Source of the DNA: Blastocladiella emersonii ATCC 22665
Lineage: Eukaryota; Fungi; Blastocladiomycota
Assembly: GCA_025594325.1 (NCBI GenBank)
Contig: JANHCV010000002.1
Span: forward strand, 1,054,001-1,118,000
Length of the DNA: 64,000 nucleotides
Direction: 5' to 3'
Part shown: positions 1 to 21,262 of the stretch, in pieces
Numbering within the stretch: position 1 is the stretch's first letter
Layout: each line of letters starts with the position of its first letter
Notes under the pieces: generated by a model
What the model was told of the DNA's origin: nothing
Seen by the model: the letters and a program-made list of their open reading frames with translations, nothing else
The model's database searches: none
Program-made: the position numbers and the translations under genes

Positions 1-1314
1 CCGCCAGCGTCCACATGCTCCTCACGATGCGCGCGAGAGGGCGTCTGTGAGCGCGACCAACCACGATCCGAGACCTGGCTGGAAGGGGAAACTCGGTTGT
101 TCGTGTTGGCCGACGGCCGTGTGAGCGACTGTGGTAGGGCAAGGTCCAACACCGAGTCACAACCAATTTGAGCTTGATCTCGCGAAAGCGACCGTGGGCG
201 AGTTGGAGAGCGGGAGCGGGAGCGGGAGCGGGGCCGATTGTGATCGGACCGATCCAGGGTGCAAGCAGGACGGTGCGCGTGAACATGCGGCTGTGGCCGA
301 GACTGTGTGGCCAGTGCGTCGGGGCCCACGGGTAGAAGAACGTCTTGCTGTTGCTTGAGGAACTGACGCGCCCACTTTGGAAGAAAGCGGTGAGGAATGT
401 CAAAGCGTCCGCTGGTCAGTTTCTTTGAAACAAGGCTACGGTGCGTTTTACTCGAGTGAGTGAGGCTTTTCAAGCGATGGCAGTAGTGATCAAGCGGTAC
501 TAGCAAGACCGGTCCCAAGCCCTCTCAACACGGAGCGTGCAGCGCTCCAATGTGCGCTTCCCCGTGAAAATCAGGTCGTAAGCTGTCTTGGAGTCGCTCA
601 CTCTGCAGTAATCGACATGGAAGGACCGCGAGCTTCATTGACAAACGTCTCAGCAAATGGACGCATCGTCGAACGATAATACTGAAAGAATGTGCGCCAT
701 TGAGATGTCAGTTCCGCAACCTCGAAGAACTCGTAGATTGGTCCAATTTCGCGCAGCCCTCGGCCAAGCACGTTAAAAAGTTCGCAAGGGAATTCGCTTG
801 AAGTCGTCGCCGTGATACAAAGCAACGCGACGCCAGGGACATCGTCTGAGCGCGGGGTCATCAAATGAACATTAGCGCACGGCATGCTGTAGAATACGAC
901 AAGCTTCGGTTGCCCAGCGATTGCACCCTTCACCCTCGCGAAACACTCCATGGCGATGCAAATGTCAGCCTAGGATTCACCGAAGGCACCGTCAGCGCGC
1001 ATTCATGGATCCTGCGATCAAGAAGGCTCGAGGTACTGATGGCTTACGTAGTTGACAAAGACGCAGCGCACTCCGCAGTCGGCCGTGTGCACAACGATGC
1101 GCCCCGAGCCCACATGCGGACCGAGAAACCTCATGATTTCCTCGTCGCTCGTGGAGCGCGAGAACCCACGAAAGCTGAAGGCGCGTGCAGGTGGAAGGTT
1201 CTCGATCGTGAGGACGCCGTCGTCGGCATCAGGGGCGTCGTCGCCAGCGTTTGGCCCAGGACTCGGTTTCGGTTCAGCCAACGAGATCGAAAGCGTCTTA
1301 TTCATTGGTTGCAT
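1..1314 (-). CDS. Mei2-like RRM1-RRM2 + RS-tail protein, array copy A (3' end runs off the window)
   Basis: Spliced model: exon MQPMN..LTIENLPPARAFSFRGF..RCVFVNY, intron gtaagc..cctag, exon ADICIAMECF..KLVVFYSMP..GVALLCIT, then SRSFHVDYC..ERAWDRSC, then KKLTSGRFDIPHRFLPKW..RPRSRSRSRSP, open to position 1. Same motifs and similar exon layout as copies B-E. Confidence 0.7.
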
Positions 1315-1526
1315 AGAGTGTGGTTTCATGAGCGCGAGTAAATAGTGTTTCGCGTGGAGTGGAGGTGCTTGAGTCGAGTCCAGGAGCATGTCTCAAACCG
1401 TGAACTCTGATCGACTCACGGGCGAGCGCGAGTTGTATCGGCGCGCTACGACGCGTCTCGGATCAGACGGACAGCAGCTAAGCGAGATCGAAACAACAAC
1501 GCTGATATATCTAATGAACCTCTGGC

Positions 1527-3354
1527 TCACGAGACGTGTCCAGTCCCGGCGAGCCTCCGTTGCAGGGCCAGCAACCTTGAAGGAAGCTCCTGCAATAGAG
1601 CAGGTGCTTGATTTGGATAGGACGGGCCCCGCGCGAGATGTACGAGCTCGTTCGGCAAGGCTGGTCGATGTGCAGTAGCGAGAGGCAGAGCCACCTTGGT
1701 TGAGTCGGCGGAATGCGCCGCTGGCCACGGCGCGTGCTGCTGAAGTCCTGGCCATGCGAGCGGGTAGCCGTTTGGATCAGCGTGCGAGTGCGGCTGGCTC
1801 GAGTTGCTAGAAGGAAGCAAGGAAGGTAGAAAGGGCTGAGCAGCAGCAGGGTCGGCGTGAGACGGTGTCAATGCAGGGCACAGGGACGTCGAGCGAGAGT
1901 CCTGGAGCTCGGGCGGTGCCGCGTTTGGCGCGGGAGTGCGCGCGGAAGCCGGCTCCGTCTTCGCGTCGTCGGAGGAGACCCGACGATGGCGCAAACGAGA
2001 GCGGGAACGGGTCCGCGAACGCGACGAGCGGCGATCTCGTGTCCGACGAGATGAAGAGCGCTCGCGCCGCTTCGGCGAGCGCGACCGTTGCCGCTTCGAG
2101 GACCGAGCGCGCGAGTCATTCCGCCGCGTCGAGGACCGAGTGCGCGAGTCGTTCCGCCGCGATCGTCCGCGTCTACTCGAGCGAGAGGGGGAGCGGGAGC
2201 GGGAGCGAGAGCGTCGCTTGCGAGAATCGCGTTCGCGGGTTCGTGATCGAGAGCGCGAACGCAAGCTTGTGCGCTTGCGCGTGCGGTCGTCATAGTTGAG
2301 CAGTAGATCGCGCAAGTCTCGTTTGGGTGCGACTGGCTGTTGAGGGGATGTAGGGACAAACAGCGGCACGGGTTTTACTCGCCTGCTCGGTTCGGGCAAC
2401 GGCTGTTTCTCGGAATACATCTTGACCCATCGCGGGAGAAGTTTTGCGGGGATGTCGAACCGCCCGCTCGTGATCTTCTTTGTGACGTATCTAAACATCA
2501 AGATGAGATGAGGAGAGGAGGCCGGTTAGTGTGAGCGGCGAGGAAACGCGGACGCGGGGGGTACGTGCAAGTACGACTTGTCCCACGCTTCTTCAGCCTC
2601 GAGCTCGCAGCCCGCGACGGAGCAAGTTCGAGCACGGATAAGGCCAAGAGCAGCGATCGAGCTTTGGATATCGCAGAATTCGGCGTAGAAGGCGCGCGAA
2701 GCACGCTGAGACCTATTGAGCGTGTCAGTACGCGCGATGGAAGCTGGCGCCAGCAAGGATGGGGTATGTACTCATGAGTAGAAGGTTCGGAGAGTTCCTG
2801 CAGCAAGAAAAGTTTGCCGTATCGGCTCAACGCCTGGTCGAGCTCGCGCTTGAGGTCGGCCGGGTATTGCGGAGTGGCTCTGACCGTGATGAGAAGCGAA
2901 GCAACACCGGGAGTGTTCCGTGAGCGCGGCGTCAGGGAGGACACCTTTTCGTTCGGCAGGATATAGTAGACAAGCGGGCGAACACGCCCAAACGACTCGT
3001 CCTTGATTTTCGCAAAGCTTTCCATGCATTCGCGAATGTCCCACTAGCAAAAATGCGAGACAGAGTTAGAGCTCACGACGTGCTACTCACTCTGCGCCGC
3101 GCGATACGCACGAAATGCACAAAGATGCGGTGCTCGGTCGAGTAACCGTTCAAGAAGACCACGCGGCCGTTACCGATGAGCGGGCTCAGAAGGTGGCGCA
3201 CCTCCGACTCCTTCAGGGAGCGCGGAAACCCGTGAACGCAGTAGGAGCGGGCGGGCGGGAGGTTCTCAATCGTGAGGACCTCGTCATCGCTCGCCATTGA
3301 GTTTGGCCCTCGCGCCGCCATCGGGCTCGCTGGTTGTTCATTCATTCGTTGCAT
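1527..3354 (-). CDS. Mei2-like RRM1-RRM2 + RS-tail protein, array copy B
   Basis: Four exons joined by gtgcgt..gctag, gtacat..aatag and gtactt..tttag: NLPPARSYCVHGFP..RIFVHF|WDIREC..PLVYYILP..AFYAEFCDI..EEAWDKS|YVTKKITSGRFDIP..LPRW, then a long RSRSRS tract. Confidence 0.75.
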
Positions 3355-3943
3355 AGAGTCTGTTACATGGAGCTCAGGGCCTCGGCAGATGGTGTGCAGG
3401 TTGCGAGGGGCGCGGGGTCGGCGGCTGACGGAACGATCGCCTGTCTCACCGAAACGTGATCGCGCCACGTGAGGGATGCGAGACGCGTTCTCGCGCGTGT
3501 CGGCGCCTTCCGCCCCGCTGACCAGTCCATCAGTTGTGTGTAGTGTGCGTCGCGAGCACCATCGTCAGGCACGGCTTGGAGGTGAGCGGGGTGGGGATGG
3601 CGGCGCAACGTGGCCCTGCATACGAACGAGCGTTCGGCAGCCGTCACGGTGTGGCGCAACGCGGCCTGGCCGGCGCACACTCGCGCTCCCGCCCACCGAC
3701 TGCTGATGTGCATCGGGGCTCGGTCGATGTGGAGCTTGTTCACCTTAGTTCGTACGACTGCAATGCGTAGGACTTGCCGCGCGGATCGACGTGGTTCACC
3801 GCGGCCAGGGGCCGACCTCATCGTACAAGCCTGAGTTGAGTGCGAATAAGTCAAGAACGAGCGTATATCTTTACATATCGCAAACTGCGGCAACTTCGTG
3901 GCTGCCATTCACACCGAGAGAGTCGCATGCGAAGTCTGACCTG

Positions 3944-5992
3944 CTACTGCTGCTGCGACCACTGGCCAAGCAGCATGCGCGGAGCGAGTGCTGCAAGCAA
4001 CTGGTTTGCATTGAGTCCCACAGTCGGCGTCGCGGAGCTCGGCAACATCAACGACTGCGGCGCGGTGCTCGGCAGCAGCAGGGACTGCGAGGCGGAGCTT
4101 GGCAACAGCAGCGACTGCGATGCGGAACTCGGCAGCAGCAACGGCGCTCCACCGGACTGCATCAAGCCTGAGGCAGCGAGTTGCAGAAGCTGGGTTTGGG
4201 AAAGGCCGAGAGGCATCGTCAACGCGCCCTGCGGCAGGATCAGAGACTGGGACTGAGCCGCCGCGTTCGGCATGGAGCCCTGGGCGAGCGCAAGCTGAAG
4301 GGTCGGCGAAAGAAGCGCGCCAGCAAGCGAGTTCTGCATCCCAGCAAGCTGCTGCAGGCTCTGCAGCTGCACGAGCTGCGTCATGTTGGGAAGCACAAAG
4401 TTGGGTACGAGAGCCGTCGCGGCGCTGACGACGGGTATGGGATTCGAGGACGGCGAGCGAGAGCGTGCGCGACTCGACTTGTTCGAGCGGGTCTGGTGCG
4501 ACCGTTCGCGCGAATGAGAGCGAGAGCGTGAGCGCCGATCGGACTTTCGAGACCGGTGCGATCGCGACTCGCGCTTGGGCGAGCCGTCCTCGCGATGAGT
4601 TGAGCGCTTCGACTCGCGCAAACGCGAAGGATGACGTGGGCGATCCCGATCACTGTCGTGGCTCCGACGCGAGCGAGAAGGCGAAGCGTTGCGCGAGCGA
4701 GAAGAAGAAGCGTTGCGCGAGCGAGAAGGAGAAGCGTTGCGCGAGCGAGAAGGAGAAGCGTTGTGCGAGCGAGAAGGCGAACCCCTGCGTATGCGAGAAG
4801 GCGACGACTTGCGTGAGCGAGAAGGTGACGACTTGCGCGACCGGGACTGAGGGAGCGACCGCGCGGGCGATCGCGACGCGGAGCGAGATCTCGAGCGATG
4901 AGCGCGTTCCCGAGTGCGCGACGGTAGCGAAGCCGGTGGGCGCATCTCGCCGTTCGGTTCCAGCGGCGCATTACTGCGAGCAGGACCGCGTTCGTGCGAG
5001 CTCGGGGGATCGCGCCCCGAAATAGCCGATCGGCGAGCCGACGTTCTGGCCGGCATAAACGTACGCGCCCAGGTTGGCATGTCGCCAATAGCAAGGTTGA
5101 AGCAGCCGCGCGCAAGTTTTTTCGAGATCTCGCTAGACGAGCGAGCAGGGCAAAGGTCAGCAGCGACGCGACGGGGGAGAAACAAGGTCGAACGTACAGG
5201 CACGACGCATCCCACGCGAGCTCCATGGTCACGACGCAATCGGTCAGGCCGATGCCCGAGCGGCAAGCGTTTTGGCAATCGGTGATGCTGTAAAACTCGC
5301 ACAAGTACTGACGCGAGCTACAAATCGACCAACGAGCACGTCAGCACCGAGGCCCTGTAAGCATCGACCAGCAGAAGATGGACGAGATGCAAGCGTACTC
5401 TTCCGTCGTCGCACCCGGGATCACCTCGAACCGAAAGAGCGGACCAAAGCTAGCCAGCTCCGGCTCAAGCGTGCGCCCGAGGTCGGCAGGACAGACCGTG
5501 GACGACCGGATCGTCACAAGAACCGAGGCGACGCCGATCGTACCCGGCTCGCACGGAGTCAAAGCGTGGCACCTCCGGCTGGGCATAGCGTAGTACGGCT
5601 CAAGAATCATGTCGCGGCCAACGCGCCGCCCTCGCAGCTGCTCGAAAGCCTTCATGCTGTCGCGGAGATCGTGCTACCGTTGGGCACGTGTGAGATGCAG
5701 CGGGCGCGGCAGTATCAACTCTCAATCGTACGAAGTAGGCGAAGGCCCAGTTTCCTCCTGGGCCCAGGATAGCTTTGATCTCGTAGCAGTTCTTGACGAG
5801 GGGCCACAGCAAACCCATGACGTCCCGCCTCGCCAGCTTGGACGAAAAGCCGCAGACGCGCAGTGTCCGCGAGGGCGGCATGTTCTTCATAGTCAGGATC
5901 TCATCGTCGTCGAGGGCGCCGTTGCGCGCGGGCGTGGCGGGAGGCGCGCGAGGGGGCGACTGCTGCCCTCGCGTGGAACTGGATGCTGACAT
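3944..5992 (-). CDS. Mei2-like RRM1-RRM2 + RS-tail protein, array copy C
   Basis: Exons: NMPPSRTLRVCGF..WAFAYF|HDLRDSMKAF..YYAMP..GVASVLVT..FGPLFRFEV|SRQYLCEFYSITDCQNA..MELAWDASC|EISKKLARGCFNL..MPTW, then RS repeats and a Q/L-rich tail. Canonical splice sites keep the frame. Confidence 0.75.
4035..4143. repeat. About 3.6 x 30-nt coding tandem repeat in the copy C tail
   Basis: Units of the form gagctcggcaacatcaacgactgcggcgcg; encode LLLPSSASQS-like 10-mers on the minus strand. Confidence 0.8.
4670..4837. repeat. 7 x 24-nt coding tandem repeat in the copy C RS domain
   Basis: Unit cgagcgagaaggagaagcgttgcg with variants; encodes SPSRSRNA-like 8-mers on the minus strand. Confidence 0.9.
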
Positions 5993-6214
5993 GGTTGCCG
6001 TTGAATCAATTGCATAAAGTTTCCATCACCAAATCCATCGTCCGCTCGCGGGATACGATGGAGTGTGAGGAGCGGGAGACGAAACGGGCCCGCTGCCGGC
6101 AGCGCAGCGGTGGCTCGCCTCGCGGCTCCAAGTCGCGCCGCTCAAGCTTGCCCACCGATGAGGCCAATCCAATGACCTTTATTCAAAGTATACGCCAGCC
6201 GTTCTCGGCTCGCC

Positions 6215-8197
6215 TCACTGCGCCGCCGGGTTGGGCGCCGAGTCCGGCTGCGGGGCGCGGCGAGCGTTGCTGCGCGGGTCGACGGCGCGCCGCTGCGGCG
6301 GCTGGACCTCGATCTGCGCCGCAGCAGCCAGCTGGCCCGCCTGCGCCGGTGCTGGCGGCAGGGGCTGGCCGGCCGCGGGGAAGAGCTGCGCGAGGTTGGC
6401 CTGCGGCCACCCGAACGGGGCCGCGGGCGGGTTGCTCCACTGGAACAGGTTGGCGAGAAGCGACGCGGACGCCATGGCGTCGGGAAGCGCGGCCTGGCCG
6501 AACTGCGGAGTCTGGAACTGCGCCGCCGCTGCTGCGGCCATCATGGCCGTCGTGAGGCTGGCGAGCTGCTGCTGCTGCTGTAATTGTTGATGTTGCTGCG
6601 CGAGCTGGGTCACGTCGGGCGCTACCTTGGCCGGCGACACCGCGGTCGTGGCGGCGGTTGCGGTACCCTTGGACTTTGGAGGCGAAAGCACGCGGGAAGG
6701 AGCGCTGTCCGCCGAAGCGCGGACCTTGTCCTTGCCCTCCTTTGACCGAGGTTGCGACGGCGAGCTAGGCCCAGCGCGGGACCGAGTCGGGGACCGCGAG
6801 CGTTCGCGCGTGGATTTCCGATCCCGTTCGCGATCCCGGTCACTGGCCCTCGACGAGCGCAGGTTTTCGCGAGTTCGGGACCGGGAGCGGGTACGCGAGC
6901 GGCGCTGCCGGGCATCCCAGTCGTGACTGCGGCTACGCGTGCGATCCCGGCCGTGGCCGTGCGATCGGTGAGGCGACCGCGACCGCGACCGCGACCGCGA
7001 GCGAGAGCGGCCTCGCTTGCGGCGGGAAAGTGGCGAGCGAGAACGAGAGCGTGAACGAGAGCGGGCTCGCCGCCGAGGTGGCGATTTGGAGCGCAGCCGT
7101 TGCGAGCGGCTCGAGCCGCCGGAAGCGCGGGTACGGCTGCTGTCGCGGGAGCCCGAGGCCGAGGCGTAGCCGTTCGACGGTGTCGATCTGGAGCGGATGA
7201 TTTCCTTGATGCTGGTCTTGGCGGCGAGAAAGGGGAGTGCCCATTTCGGCAGGAAGCTCCGAGAAATCTCAAAGTGGCCGCGGGAGACCTTGCGAGCGGT
7301 CGCTCTACACACGCGCGAGAAATCGGTCAGCGGCACCAAGGGACGGGGAGCGAGCGTTGAGACCACGCACACGCAGTTCAAGTCCCACGCCAGCTCCATG
7401 GACACGACGCAGCCAGGAAGGCGCACCACGGAGCGGTACGCCGTTTCGCGGGCGCCAATCTCGCAGAACTCGACCATGTACTTGCGCGTGCTACACTCGT
7501 GCGAGTTGAGCGTTCGATCAAGAGAAGCAGGGACAAACGATCGCCGCCACGCGTACCCGTCGCTTGTGGGCTCGCCGACTGCTTCGAACCGGTAGATCGC
7601 GCCAGACTTCTGCAGCGCCAGCTTGAGCGCGTCCGCAGGGTCCACAGTCGGATCCGACAGCGGCGGCACCGTGACGAGGACGGAAGCGACACCCTGCACG
7701 TTCACACCACACGGGGTCGGTTCGAGGGCCAGGCCGGCGGGCATGGTGTAGAAGGCGAGCAGCTCGTGGCCGTCCACGGTCTGGCCCTGGAACCGCGGGT
7801 AGGCCTCGATGCAGTCGCGAATGTCGCGCTAAACGTAGCGCGACGATAGTGTGAGCTACGTCAGGCGCGGGCGCGTGTGATGCACGCAATCGTCAGCAGC
7901 GTACGTAGTGCGAGAAGATGCAGTAGTCGTCACCGCCGGGGGAGATAAAGATGCGCCCGCGGCCGGCCAGCGGGGCGAGCAGGCGGTTGACGCGCTGCGT
8001 GCTCAACTTGCGCGGGATCCCGCGGATGCACAACGATCGCGACGGCGGCATCGTCTCGAGCCGCAGCGGCGGGTCGGGAGGGGCGACGTCTACTTGGACA
8101 GGGCGACTCGTGAGAATGTGCTGGTACGGTGCAACAGACGAGTCGCGCGGGACGCACTGGGAGCCGGGTCGTCCGGCGGCGATGCGGCCGTCATCAT
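6215..8197 (-). CDS. Mei2-like RRM1-RRM2 + RS-tail protein, array copy D
   Basis: Start ccaccATG at 8197, intron 8090-8157, TMPPSRSLCIRGIP..YCIFSHY|RDIRDCIEA..LLAFYTMP..GVASVLVT..|TRKYMVEFCEI..MELAWDLNC|ATARKVSRGHFEI..LPKW, then RS tract and Q/A/P-rich tail. Confidence 0.75.
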
Positions 8198-8500
8198 GGT
8201 GGGAATGTGATCGGGTTGGGCTCACGGGAGAGATGCGTGGAGTGCGACACCCTCGAGAAGTTGCATGGAGTGTGTCTGCCAGTGCCCGGGAGGCGTGTCC
8301 AGGTTGGGGACGAGAAGGGGGAGCGCCGGCCGCCGCTCGGCTGGCGATGCAGCGACCGGCCGGCTCACCTGACCCTGAAACGCGACGCGCTTCGGAGCGC
8401 CCCTGCCCAAAGCGCAACGCTGGCCTGAACCCGCTCGCCTAAAGAACCGACTATCAGCCATGGAGGAAAAGAACTGAGCGTGTTGGCAAAGGTTTTACTC

Positions 8501-10349
8501 TCATTGCGGACGGCGATTCAGCCCGATGTAGTGCTGCTGCAGCGCAAAGAGCTCCGCCGCCGTCGACTGCGAAGCTTGCATGGAAGCCCCCAGAAACGGC
8601 ATCGCCAGTGAGCCAGGATGAGTTGCCCCGCCAAGCTGCTGCGCAGGCGGAGCGCCGTGCTGAGCGTACGGCAAGTTGAACGGCATCGGTGGCAGCGCAC
8701 CGTCCGGCTGCGTCAGACCCGGAACGAAGCCCGCGAGCGCCATGCCCGCTGGGATTCCTCCGTACCCAGTCATCGGGCCAAAGGAAGCGTATGCGAGCGC
8801 GTGCATGCCGGCGGAGAGCGCGCACATCGCGCGCTGCGGTTGATGCTGATGTCCAAAGAAACCGAGTCCGTTGAGAAGCGCAGGGTGAGTGTAATTAGGA
8901 AGCGAAGACGGCGAGAGCAGGTGCGCGTGAGCATGGCCTGGCTCGTGAGATCGGTCGTGTCGCGATCGAGATGAAGGCCGTGTACGAGAGCGAGAGCGAG
9001 AGCGTGATCTCGGTCTCGACGACCAGGAACGAGACGAGGAACGCGAGCACGTTTGGTGCCGGGTGCGAGGACGAGCAGACAGCGAGCGTCGGCGGGCCGA
9101 GCTGCGGCCTCGACGAGATGAAGGGCCAGGCGATCGATGTTGATCGAGCGAGCGGGAAAGAGACCGCGAACGCGTGCGCGAGCGGTACCGAGAAGGATCA
9201 CGATTGCGACCTCGGCCGAGGTGGAAGTCGTGAACAGGGTCAGGCCCGCGGGAGCTCGGCCGAGTGCGCGGCGACGGCCGTCGCGGCGAGCGCGACCGAC
9301 TTAGGGTGCGCGTTGATGACGACGGTCTCGACTCGCGCTGCTTCTTGAACTGAGCCTCGCGCTTCACCCAGTTGGGCGCCCTTACTTGGAACCCGGGGCG
9401 CTCGGTTTCTGAGCTGGCGTAGGACGATGCCCATCGCGGGAGGTGGCCCCTGTAGATGCGGAAGTGACTCCGAGCGACCTTGTCGGAGATTTCCCTACGA
9501 CTTGCGCGAGCGGTCAGTCTCGTTGTTGAAGGAGCAAAGCGGAAGCAACGTACACGCAGCGCCGGTCCCACGCGCGTTGAATGGTCGCGCTCATGGTCTT
9601 GAACTGGCCTCGCGATATGATGACCGCGGTGCATTTTGACGTGTCGTAATACTCGCAAAGAAACTGGCGCGAGCCCGAGCTATCACTACACGCCCGTGCA
9701 GAGTACATTCGAGTGAGTGTGAGTGTGAGTCGCCTGGTCCGGTAGCAGCCCAGAGGAACGTTTTCTTTGCGTACCCAGCAGTCGCAGACCGCGTCACTTC
9801 TTCGAAGAGAAAGATGCTCCCGAACTGCTCGAGCTCGCGTTTCAGCGCGGACGCGACCACTTCATCGGTTTGGTCGCGAAAAGACTTGACGGTGGCGAGC
9901 AGCGAGGCGACGCCGATCGTCGTCTCCCTGCACGGCGTGAGCGAGGGGACCAAACGGTTGGGCATCGAGTCGAAGACAAGCAATCCCGAGCTGATCAATC
10001 CCGCGTGGCGGCCCAGCTCGCAGTGCTTGAGCCGCGCCATGGCTTCGACACTGTCGCGGAGATCCTTCTGTTGCGCACACCGAGTGAGAACCGTCCATGC
10101 AAGAGCGTTGAGGTCGAAGCTTGGGCGGGCGCGTCAGCGGAAGAATCGAAGCGCGATGGCCAGACGTGAGGTCCGTTTGAGCGTCATGAGCAAGGCTCGC
10201 CATGGCGTTTCGGAAAGTGTTGATGGCATAGCGTGAAGGCGACAGCGGCCGAACGTTTCGTGGCCCGGGCGAGCGGGGTAGCTCGACCGGGCTGGATAGC
10301 AAGTTTGAGTCCGGTGAGGCGACTGGTACGCCCGGTTTGGCAGCTTCAA
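8501..10349 (-). CDS. Mei2-like RRM + RS-tail protein, array copy E (first exon junction looks disrupted; possibly truncated or pseudogene)
   Basis: CRLHAMPSTLSETPWRALLMTLKRTSRL aligns with copy B RRM1, but an in-frame TGA lies at 10134-10136 with no suitable GT donor. Downstream KDLRDSV..GVASLLAT..|SRQFLCEYYD..QRAWDRRC|EISDKVARSHFRI..LPRW and the RS tract are intact. Confidence 0.6.
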
Positions 10350-12316
10350 GGGGCAGGTTGCTGATGCAGCGACGGACTTCGCCCTCTTCTAGTAAATCCA
10401 AGGTTCTACATGTTCAAGTCTAAGCCCTCGATATTAATGCAGCAAGTTGCTCAAGTTCATTTGCTTACGTTGTGGATGAATGCGGAGGTCGAGTGCGATC
10501 CGCTCGAGTCGCAGGAAAAGGCGAGCGAGCGGGTGGCGCCTGTCACCCACCCATCAGGTCATGTGCGCATGAGCGACGCGAACCCGCAACTGACTCCAAG
10601 CACGGCAACAGTCTCATGGGCACTGTCAGCTCATTCGGGTTGCTGCACAGCGATATGGCCCCGCGTGGGCGAGCGCGCCCTGTCTTCGACCGCCGTGGCC
10701 ACACGCATCGTTCGCGGCGGGAGAGGGCTCCGCCCACTTGCCGTCTCCTCGCAGAGTCTGACCCGAGTTCCCGCTGGGCAGTGTGACTCGGCAACTCGAG
10801 GCATCGTTCAAAGAAATTGTGGTCAAGATTCAGTAGTCAGAGCGGGTCCGGAACACGCCGAAGCGCGGAGCGGGATTACGTGCACTAACTCACCCCCAGC
10901 CGTAGCCCACGCAGATAAAGTGCTAAAATTTATTTTACGGCGCTAAAATAGCTCACTGTACATATGATATTATTATGCAAAGAATCAGCCCGATCGGTTA
11001 TTGTGTGCGATTCAAGAAGCTAAGCCCTAAGTGCGTTTTTCGTCCGAGCGGCCAAACCGAAAGTTTTTTTCAACTTTGCACGGTCGGACGAGATCTCGGT
11101 ACCCCCTCATCTCGACTCGGAGATTTTTGTATATTAGGGGTCCCTGAAGGTCCCTGATCACCATCATATGCTCAGAAAAAATATTCTAGACCATCTCCAA
11201 TTTAGACATCTAAGTCGCGTCACGTGACGGAGGCCCGCGGATGAAGGCCTCGGCCGGCCGCAACGCGTCGTTCATGAAGGCCGCCGTTGCAAACGTCAAG
11301 CCGGGATCAGAAAGACTCTCTCTTTTCTCTTGTTGGGCAAAGTTCCCTCGCGGGCGAGGTGTTCGAAGTACACTCTGCTGGCGTGCTTCAAACGGCCAAG
11401 CTTAGCGCTGTCCTCCCCTGTTTCCTCCCAGCGCGATCTGAGGCAGACTCACTCGTTCTCGTGGCGGTAGGAGCACAGACCACTTTCTGTCCCATCATTT
11501 GAACAAGGTGGGCGGCGACCAAGCGCCTTGCAAGCAGTCTACGCGGCAACGATCCTGTAACAGCACCGCTACATGTCGCCGTGCACTCGACCACGACCAT
11601 GGATGCTGCAGACAAGAGGCACTCAGCCGAGCGCTGCGACGCGAACCTGTCAGCAGCGTGGCCGATGAAGCTCGCAACGGTCGACGTGGTGACGTTGCGC
11701 GGCACGTTCCTCGATTGGCAAGCGCCCGAAGCGCAAACACCGGCGACCGATGCGACGCGCGTGCGTGGGTTCAGTTGCGCTGAGGAGCGGTCGGCGAAGC
11801 GAAATGACTCGCGAGCACGGCCACAAGCGCAAGAAGCAGTTCTTAACGTCGCGCGCGTGAAGCAGCTGTAGGACGTCTGTAGGATACGATCCGAAGGCCG
11901 ACGTGGATGGAACGGTGGTGGTCTGCAAGTATCGGACGAGGGTACCCGCTCAAGCTTCAAGGCAGGTCAAGAGTTCGAAGCAAGAGGAGTGCTCCCTCGA
12001 CCTGAAGCGGGCACTCAGATCGCTCCCATGGTAACCAAGGATGGAAGACGCATGAGCTGTGCCGAGCTCGGCGGCCGCGGCGAAGTTCGCAGGCCGACCC
12101 AGGACGACGGCACCCGCCGCGAACCATCACTCGCTGCTTCAGGGGCTGCGACGGCAGATGGCAATAACAAGAGCAAGAGTATTGTTGCACCAAGTTCCGT
12201 CAAGTTCTATCAGTTTTCATGGGGTATGTGGGAGCAGCGTTGCTCGCCGGCAGCCTCGAAGTCTGAGCCACCTCGCGCAGCCGGTCCTCGCTCCTCCTTC
12301 GCCGCCGACACCAACC

Positions 12317-20007: not shown

Positions 20008-21262
20008 ATGGAATCCTCTCCCGACATGCAGCAAATGGACCTCCCCGACGAACTATGGCTGAGCATCGTCGAGCGCTTACCGCAAGCCAACTTTTGCCGC
20101 GACCTCGCTGCGCTGGGCAGGGCGAGCCGCCAGCTTGCCGGGCTCGTCCGTCCCATCCTCTACCGGACCTTGACCATTGAGCTGGACACCGGCCCGCGCA
20201 CCGGACACGTTGACAGCCGAGTTGACTTGAGCAAGTGGCCCGGCTGGCTCCCGCTTGTCCGCGAACTTGTGCTGCAGGGAAGAGATTACGGCACGCCCGC
20301 TGGCGCCGCGGTCTCAACCCCGCCACTTGCCGCCGCCACACAAATAGACTCGGCGGATCTTGCCCCGCCGATTTCGATCGATTACACTGTCATTGTCGCT
20401 GAGCTTGCCGAAATCAATCCGATCACGTCGTTTTGCGTGCGAGGAGTCACGCTCGAGTACGGCTTGTTGATCCAAACGCTTTCGAGCTTCGCACAGACCC
20501 TTACTCGCCTCGACCTGCACTTACCAAGCTTCACGGGAGAAATTGACCTCGAGCAGCTCGTGTTCCCTTCACTGACTCGACTTTCAATCTCTGCGTTTCA
20601 TGCGATTCAAGCTCTCCCGCAGGCGCCCAACTGCCGTACTCTCCTGCTTGTTCTACCCACTTTCCCCCAAAAACTCATCCACCAGATCCGGGCGATGCAG
20701 AGCTTGGCATCGTTGACCGCCCTTGGTAGCGATGCAAAGTCAAGAAGCTACCTCCCGTCTATGCTGCTCGCCCCCGGCTCCATCGCGACGTCGCTCGTCC
20801 ACTGGAACTCGGTCTGGCTGTCGGTCGATGACCTCGAAAAGTTGCCCCCCTTTACCGCATCTCCAAACCTTCGCAAACAGCCGGGGGCCGAACGTCATGT
20901 CTTCACAGTCGACAACACACAATGGCAAGCTTGTTGAGGCGTGCAAGTCGCGTCATTGGCCGGATTTCAAGCGGTTTAGGTGGATAAGACGGCGGTACAG
21001 CGTCACCTTCGCCCACAGTCGGCGGTTGACGTAGCAGGCTGCTATCCCGCTGCGGGGCCGTAGAACTCGCAGCGAGCGTGAGAGACTCGAGATCCACCGC
21101 CGCCAAGTTCGAGTCAGTCGGTTCATTAAGCTCCATGGTGATGCGGTGATTGAACGTTTCGAGCATCTGGGAGCGGGGGCATTGCATCCGATGAACCGTC
21201 ACTTTCGCGGACACGGCATGGACACGGACCGAGCCACCAATCACGAGTTCCGCACCGTTTGA
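20008..21262 (+). pseudogene. F-box/LRR-like gene with apparent frameshift and premature stop
   Basis: F-box motif DLPDELWLSIVERLP..LGRASRQLAGLVRPILY and LxxL repeats. The frame appears to switch at the C6 run 20845-20850, and a TAG at 21032-21034 interrupts the continuing frame. Confidence 0.55.

Follow-up and report, generated by a model that had tools for sequence, protein, structure and literature searches.

A tandem array of six genes in Blastocladiella emersonii encoding a probable, fast-diverging SR-like protein family

Fungi usually have very few serine/arginine-rich (SR) proteins, and few RNA-binding proteins are as conserved as the canonical SR proteins. Thus, a tandemly amplified and fast-diverging SR-like family would be unexpected in an early-diverging fungus. 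The question of whether there is such a family is raised by one end of a 64,000-nucleotide stretch of DNA from Blastocladiella emersonii ATCC 22665 (assembly GCA_025594325.1, contig JANHCV010000002.1, positions 1,054,001 to 1,118,000 of the forward strand; hereafter, the window). There, an earlier note, made from the sequence alone, had seen a row of related genes whose products would combine a pair of RNA recognition motifs (RRMs) of the type found in the meiotic regulator Mei2 with the arginine/serine-rich (RS) tail of a splicing factor. What are these genes, do they form a family of their own, and from what kind of protein could they have arisen? The answer argued for here, and considered probable, is that they are a tandem array of six genes encoding a fast-diverging SR-like family, which the searches run found only in B. 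emersonii.

Six paralogs in tandem

The locus holds six paralogous genes, all on the minus strand and arranged in tandem in the order E, D, C, B, A and Z. Their spliced models were built from a six-frame table together with conserved GT...AG splice sites. Five of the copies lie within window positions 1-10349, and the sixth, Z, follows A beyond the start of the window. It was found in a larger region, JANHCV010000002.1:1,050,215-1,072,197 of the same assembly (L001), in which a position equals 18198 minus the window coordinate, and which is identical to window 1-10500, read in reverse complement, at all 10,500 bases. The spliced models are open coding sequences (CDSs) of 1335-1845 nucleotides (nt), and that of A runs 228 nt past position 1. 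Local hidden Markov models built from the copies found no additional copy in the window from 10.4 to 64 kb. The array, the common strand and the truncation of copy A by the window edge are thus as the earlier note had described them; its count of at least five copies, about 2 kb apart, becomes six, with Z outside the window.

The structure of the genes has been kept to a degree that their protein sequences have not. The 18 introns are short (58-89 nt), mostly with GTACG donors, and comprise 17 of the GT-AG type and one of the GC-AG type. Three intron positions, with phases 0, 2 and 2, are common to the copies, which agrees with the shared positions and phases noted before, except that E is without intron 1; D has one additional 5′ intron. 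The phase-0 intron lies between β3 and α2 of RRM1, the first phase-2 intron between β2 and β3 of RRM2, and the second phase-2 intron directly after the A-W-D that closes RRM2. Exon 2 is 272 nt long in D, B, A and Z, and 275 nt long in C. In all copies, the G+C content of the third codon positions in the domain-coding part (GC3, 0.60-0.87) is higher than GC1, GC2 and the G+C content of the introns (0.50-0.61), which fits real coding sequence, although in Z the excess is small (GC3 0.60).

The proteins are only 27-44% identical to one another over their N-terminal ~240 amino acids (aa), a divergence as high as had been noted. The identity is 44% for A and Z, 42% for B and Z, 36% for B and A, and 27-35% for the remaining pairs. 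Identity is thus highest among copies that lie side by side (B, A and Z), the array having grown by local tandem duplication.

Searches for relatives returned B. emersonii only. A phmmer search with residues 15-262 of D against 1.84 billion representative sequences recovered the query itself and nothing else. Word-indexed protein searches, with a single sequence and with profiles (two alignments of exons 1+2, with length limits of 136-434 aa and 165-525 aa), recovered D itself or nothing. A single-protein scan of the JGI metagenomes found no relative, and no part of the alignment was sufficiently conserved to serve as a query there. In the literature searched, no family joining Mei2 RRMs to an RS domain was described, and nothing was found on this family in Blastocladiella. 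Among the searches run, then, the family is an orphan by sequence, found in B. emersonii alone, in keeping with the lineage-specific origin that had been suggested for it.

Domains of the encoded proteins

Each protein is built in the same order: a short leader of proline and acidic residues, RRM1, a linker, RRM2, a short conserved motif (~29 aa), then the RS domain and a low-complexity tail. The two N-terminal domains are not recognised from single sequences, as Pfam gave no RRM family for the spliced D protein or for either of its domains up to E 10, nor for the raw pieces of the open reading frames (ORFs), and a phmmer search of the D protein against PDB sequences gave no match. Profiles were therefore made by aligning translated paralog exons to the D protein with MAFFT, two exon types at a time; given three or more, the program places fragments that are not homologous on top of one another. 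The usable alignments were the D backbone with exons 1+2, from which the RRM1 profile and the AlphaFold input were taken, and the backbone with exons 2+3, which gave the RRM2 profile. Against PDB sequences, the RRM1 profile has 56 matches, almost all of them RRMs, and the best of these, over the full domain, are U2AF65 RRM2 (E 1.7e-3), CELF2 (E 2.3e-3) and a U1A-like RRM, 9if7_LY (E 9e-3).

Structure prediction leads to the same fold. The AlphaFold model of D from its single sequence is poor (mean predicted local distance difference test, pLDDT, 47.5). With the paralog alignment, AlphaFold2 gives a mean pLDDT of 65.6 and 82-96 for RRM1, whose elements follow in the order β-α-β-β-α-β (E19-23, H31-42, E46-51, E55-61, H65-75, E86-90, where E is strand and H is helix). 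In RRM2, the first four elements (E107-116, H126-135, E140-146, E155-164) have pLDDT values of about 80-87 and are followed by H166-175. Foldseek matches this model to tandem-RRM proteins only, with probability 1.00 and E-values from 7e-8 in Swiss-Prot, from 4e-7 in the PDB and from 1.7e-8 in the AFDB clusters. The best 30 matches in Swiss-Prot include IGF2BP1, plant SR30/SR34, SRSF1, Mip6, TIA1, Sxl and HuD, and the alignments to IGF2BP1, TIA1, Sxl, HuD and IMP3 run over both domains. A shape search of the ESM Atlas, which gives no E-values, returned RRM_1 proteins with TM-scores of 0.34-0.44; VIA-align superimposed RRM1 on the RRMs of U1A, SHARP and p14 with Z 10-11 and a root-mean-square deviation of ~2 Å over 74-79 residues; and the nearest neighbours by language-model features are RRM_1 clusters, whether the entire region or one domain at a time is taken. 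On this evidence, domain 1 is an RRM, and domain 2 is very probably an RRM.

The residues that usually mark an RRM have been largely replaced. Position 2 of RNP2 in RRM1 is C, S or R, without an aromatic residue, and the only invariant residue of its RNP1 is the Phe at position 5, whereas RRM2 has an RNP1-like S/T-R-x-[FY] and the invariant A-W-D at its end. A reading of RRM1 as a UHM was tried and set aside, there being no R-x-F motif between α2 and β4. The linker between the two domains is ~15 aa long, with an invariant Thr-Pro. Following RRM2, all six copies have a basic and hydrophobic, family-specific motif of ~29 aa, A-W-D ... [KR]K[LIV]x[SR]G[RH]Fx[IL] ... LP[KR]W[AV], for which there is no Pfam match.

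According to the definition that Manley and Krainer are said to have given in 2010, an SR protein has one or two N-terminal RRMs, followed by an RS domain that is no shorter than 50 aa, exceeds 40% in RS content and has consecutive RS/SR repeats. The array proteins have RRM-fold domains at the N-terminal side, and RS content lies above this limit in E, D, C, B and Z. In these five, the RS tract is 127-179 aa long, with 35-49 RS/SR dipeptides in each; in the best 50-aa window, 50-62% of the residues are in RS/SR dipeptides, and the unbroken runs are 6-12 aa long. The tract of A is weak, with 10 RS/SR dipeptides in 44 aa (32%), and falls below the 40% limit. The proposed combination of an RRM pair with an SR-type RS tract is therefore borne out as an architecture, with corrections for E, whose RRM1 is degenerate and carries a TGA, and for A, whose RS tract is weak.

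The tails, of 120-171 aa in all copies, are of low complexity and rich in A, Q, P, L or S, much as the Q/P/A-rich ends had been described. No Pfam domain is found in any of the six, PF04059 included, and hence no third RRM. In A, B, Z and E, the protein ends in a motif, L-[LIF]-[AS]-L-Q-[RQ]-[RKH]-[LY] (e.g. RLLALQRRL), for which Pfam gives no match; ~100 aa of low complexity lie between it and the RS domain. Young tandem repeats are present in the DNA coding for the RS domains, with a period of 24 (7.2 units, 4668-4840) in C and of 33 (2.2 units, 2090-2161) in B, and in that coding for the tail of C (period 30, 3.9 units, 4027-4143). The RS domains and tails thus grow through local repeat expansion.

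Single copies and their surroundings

The coordinates of the copies and their features are collected in Table 1.

Table 1. Positions of the array copies, their predicted domains and short elements (window coordinates, unless L001 is given)
Feature	Position	Strand	Details
Copy E	8501..10240	-	predicted start 10040 or upstream; RRM1 N-half degenerate, about 10240-10137; open frame 10133-9775; exons 9685-9554, 9494-8501
Copy E domains		-	RRM2 9938-9565; motif 9564-9419; RS 9367-8912; tail 8911-8504
In-frame TGA, copy E	10134..10136	-	within the RRM1 relic, β2-β3 loop
Copy D (H9P43_002284)	6215..8197	-	predicted start 8197; exons 8197-8158, 8089-7905, 7828-7557, 7490-7371, 7304-6215
Copy D domains		-	RRM1 8066-7739; RRM2 7717-7382; motif 7381-7229; RS 7201-6731; A/Q/P tail 6730-6218
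Copy C	3944..5992	-	predicted start 5992; exons 5992-5732, 5673-5399, 5317-5198, 5132-3944
Copy C domains		-	RRM1 5896-5581; RRM2 5559-5209; motif 5208-5057; RS 4957-4421; L/Q/A/S tail 4420-3947
Copy B	1527..3354	-	predicted start 3354; exons 3354-3112, 3043-2772, 2712-2575, 2490-1527
Copy B domains		-	RRM1 3276-2954; RRM2 2932-2580; motif 2579-2415; RS 2312-1932; tail 1931-1530, end LLALQRRLAGTGHVS
Copy A	1..1314, CDS end 228 nt past position 1	-	predicted start 1314; exons 1314-1048, 969-698, 632-501, 435-beyond start
Copy A domains		-	RRM1 1212-880; RRM2 858-512; motif 511-360; weak RS 278-147
Copy Z	L001 18723-20458	-	
Post-RRM2 motif, D example	7229..7381	-	alignment of six copies
C-terminal motif	1530-1590 (B), 8504-8570 (E); L001 18360-18426 (A), 20400-20458 (Z)		
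ACTYYATGCAA	8261-8271 (D), 6010-6020 (C), 3349-3359 (B), 1309-1319 (A)	-	

Copy E differs from the others in having a TGA in the frame of its KDLRDS helix. Upstream of this stop codon (RLHAMPSTLSETPWRALLMTLKRTSRLAI) there is a faint likeness to the N-terminal half of RRM1, without the PP-x-R signature; downstream of it, where 10040 is the first in-frame ATG, the copy has kept RRM2, the motif, an RS region of 152 aa and the tail. Contigs from three DNA sequencing runs of the source sample cover 6977-10420 without gaps or indels and agree with the assembly at E, so that the stop codon is not an assembly slip; over a 6-kb stretch of these contigs, the sole base difference, A>G at position 9194, is confined to one of the runs. 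Removal of the stop codon by an intron was considered and rejected, the nearby GT...AG candidates being only 24 and 46 nt long and not restoring the frame. Copy E could be a recent pseudogene or could encode a protein lacking RRM1, starting from the ATG at 10040, and the latter seems more likely because the divergence of E is of long standing.

In the same short-read DNA, joints between contigs (4534-4715, 4537-6973, 6997-9260) connect the RS-coding repeats of C, D and E, and the depth rises to a spike of ~2700 at 6821-7020, over (GCGACC)n. Most simply, the joints would be assembly-graph links through common simple RS-coding repeats; another possible source is exchange among the RS tracts.

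In copy D, introns 2 and 3 (within 7305-7556, minus strand) are 66 nt each, in frame and free of stop codons, for which reason the ORF reads through them and a query made from the long ORF is 81% identical to the deposited protein (hypothetical protein H9P43_002284), the one match to that query. Retention of either intron would add 22 residues with the reading frame intact. In copy A, intron 2 (633-697, minus strand) is apparently of the GC-AG type (GCGCAC...TGAAG), in the place and phase that a GT-AG intron occupies in the other copies.

A short element, ACTYYATGCAA, has four matches in the 64-kb window, compared with 0.02 expected by chance, and all four are at the 5′ ends of array copies, at or just upstream of the start in D, C, B and A. 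By eye, it is also seen at Z (L001 about 18735), but not at E. In A, B and Z, no in-frame ATG precedes the one within the element (MQ[RP]M...); for C and D, this ATG is out of frame or upstream and opens upstream open reading frames (uORFs) of 40 (C) and 14 (D) codons. The element may belong to the core promoter or mark the start site, or it may be the conserved start of a uORF.

Bordering the array are a COQ7 gene, upstream of E, and a long gene, coiled-coil-like in its product, downstream of Z. Over these 15 kb (L001 5583-20767; window about 12615 to -2569), the public gene table calls D alone, and the other five copies are absent from it. Even for D, the deposited protein of 466 aa has had most of its RS domain spliced out and contains a short out-of-frame filler exon, compared with 568 aa for the uninterrupted frame. 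The assembly was made from PacBio HiFi reads, polished with Illumina reads, and annotated by funannotate (PMC9730499). Orphan genes are easily missed by an annotation whose text mentions neither RNA-seq nor a transcriptome. The array shows that whole families are missing from the 10,031 genes predicted for B. emersonii.

Origin, possible function and known systems

Could the RRM pair have been derived from RRM1 and RRM2 of the Mei2/AML proteins, with RRM3 lost and an RS tail gained, to give meiosis- or stage-specific regulators of RNA? This origin, which was that of the earlier note, is unlikely. The peptides quoted for it are indeed present (PPSRSLCIRG, FSHY|RDIRDC and LLAFYTMP in D, FGPLFRF and LCEFYS in C), and the family is like the Mei2 pattern in three places, namely PP-S/A-R before β1, [FY]xD[IL]R after β3 and Y-x-M-P after β4. 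The short linker is a further likeness, and a PF04059-bearing cluster is among the language-model neighbours, although it accounts for just 2 of 100. However, U2AF65 RRM2 and the U1A-like RRM can be aligned to these motifs just as well: the alignment to 9if7_LY places PsRslcirGip against PKQTLYIRGLP and llvfysmP against IQAFYAHK, and YAFCEYVDI of U2AF65 RRM2 (an ‘F.EY.DI’ pattern) stands beside ciFvnykDi in RRM1 and lvefcdi in RRM2 of the family. Thus, the motifs are not specific to Mei2. Classical SR RRMs also carry F-x-D-x-R-D-A after β3. The position in RNP2 that lacks an aromatic residue here is aromatic in canonical RRMs and in the Mei2 string LFVRN, and Pfam RRM_1, which does detect RRM1 and RRM2 of Mei2, does not detect these domains. 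With U2AF65 RRM2, CELF2 and the U1A-like RRM as best matches, and with no Mei2, AML or OML entry in the Swiss-Prot Foldseek best 30, the assignment of the RRMs to the Mei2 type is not supported. As RRM3 (PF04059), which defines Mei2, is absent, a point on which the earlier note was right, the family should not be filed as Mei2-like, although its RRM1 and RRM2 may still, with low probability, descend from those of Mei2.

It is possible, though doubtful, that the family originated from an ordinary two-RRM SR protein of the SRSF1, Srp2 or Npl3 type by tandem duplication and divergence past the point of sequence recognition. The domain order is that of SR proteins, with the RS domain C-terminal, and two-RRM SR proteins (SR30, SR34, SR34A, SR34B, SRSF1 and rsp-3) make up 11 of the best 30 matches of Foldseek in Swiss-Prot; they align over residues 17-248 (SRSF1 rows, 1-248 to 5-248) with identities of 15-19%, among the highest listed. 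Npl3 RRM1-2 is also among the structure matches. Helix α1 of RRM2 opens with P-x-[DE]-L-[KDG]-R, which we take to recall the SWQDLKD helix of the pseudo-RRMs. The heptapeptide itself is absent, however, and the RRM2 profile matches no pseudo-RRM. The family profiles do not pick out the RRMs of SRSF1, SRSF2 or SRSF3 among PDB sequences, Npl3 and Tra2-beta appear only at E >1, and those Foldseek alignments that pass through the disordered tail may be inflated.

Several points weigh against a functional, SR-like family. GC-rich DNA readily yields long ORFs, and the ORF list of the window contains many that are spurious. The sequencing runs found for the source sample are three, all of DNA, with no RNA run listed, and the text of the genome paper (PMC9730499) is silent on RNA-seq and transcriptomes. 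β4 of RRM2 and the post-RRM2 motif are modelled at low confidence, in the case of β4 because the alignment used for the model had no exon 3 paralogs, and it had none for the motif either; the RRM2 profile matches U2AF65 RRM2 only at E 0.8, over α1-β4; hhalign of RRM1 with RRM2 is not significant; and with RNP motifs so degenerate, RNA binding is not assured. The stop codon in E and the weak RS tract in A indicate that the array may be partly decaying. Were the array mostly non-functional, it would consist of unexpressed or decaying duplicates whose long ORFs have survived owing to the scarcity of stop codons at high GC content. Such an array could be missing from the gene table in five of its six copies, diverge very highly and have as small a GC3 excess as that of Z. 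Nevertheless, this is most improbable: at 27-44% identity, all 18 introns have kept GT/GC-AG borders, conserved positions and phases are accompanied by conserved exon sizes, the structural core residues and the 29-aa motif have been retained in all copies, GC3 exceeds GC1, GC2 and intron GC, and the start-proximal element is kept at four copies. The absence of five copies from the gene table could have a simple source in the way in which orphan genes are missed.

The SR-like family thus remains the preferred reading, and its mode of action can be outlined by analogy with SR and SR-like proteins. If the genes are expressed, the RRM pair would bind pre-mRNA or mRNA; the RS domain would be phosphorylated and would mediate nuclear import, targeting to speckles and contacts with other RS proteins; and the low-complexity tail may favour the assembly of condensates. 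A role in splicing or in messenger ribonucleoproteins would follow from such properties. The conserved basic motif is placed between RRM2 and the RS domain, presumably where SRSF1 has its docking motif for SRPK, which is speculation. Divergence of the paralogs may have led to different specificities for RNA or for partners, while local tandem duplication has enlarged the array and internal tandem repeats keep changing the RS tracts. Copy E has lost a working RRM1 and, if expressed, would give an RRM2-motif-RS protein from the downstream ATG.

Perhaps the array is part of a large and fast-diversifying, Blastocladiella-only repertoire for RNA recognition, whose paralogs each have an RNA or partner specificity of their own and serve not housekeeping splicing but stage-specific control (e.g. 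of mRNAs that the zoospore stores untranslated) or a conflict with RNA parasites or retroelements; this is quite unlikely as matters stand. Should the array proteins control splicing or the storage of mRNA during the cycle from zoospore to sporangium, this model organism would gain a set of candidate regulators. The array is also a natural series of divergent RRM-RS proteins in which the evolution of RNA-binding specificity and of RS domains can be studied.

How do the array proteins compare with known systems? With Mei2/AML/TEL/OML proteins they share two N-terminal RRMs, a short linker and some residue patterns near β1, after β3 and after β4, but where Mei2 has RRM3, its most conserved domain, they have an RS domain. 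The DBHS proteins (SFPQ, NONO, PSPC1) are the top Foldseek matches in the PDB, over ~235-250 columns, and likewise have RRM1-RRM2, a conserved extension (NOPS) and low-complexity regions; however, the TM-scores are only ~0.25, DBHS proteins are without an RS domain, no coiled coil was detected in the array proteins, and the counterpart of NOPS would be the post-RRM2 motif, of ~29 aa and modelled at low confidence. RRM2 of U2AF65 is the best profile match for RRM1 and the best RRM match for RRM2, and shares the ‘F.EY.DI’ pattern from β3 to α2, whereas U2AF65 itself has an N-terminal RS domain and three RRM-type domains, including a UHM, and is encoded by a conserved single-copy gene; the scores are marginal and indicate membership of the RRM superfamily rather than orthology.

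The closest likeness in layout is to SR and SR-like proteins (SRSF1/ASF-SF2, plant SR30/SR34, Srp2 of S. pombe and yeast Npl3), which have N-terminal RRM(s) and a C-terminal RS domain, and whose two-RRM members are among the best whole-length structure matches. No kinship is detectable at the sequence level, as the RRMs of the array are not Pfam RRM_1 matches and the profiles do not favour the RRMs of SR proteins. The RNP motifs of the array are degenerate. Compared with SR proteins, the array proteins have an additional motif between RRM2 and the RS domain and a long A/Q/P/L tail past it; and whereas canonical SR proteins are highly conserved, the six neighbours in this array have retained no more than 27-44% identity with one another.

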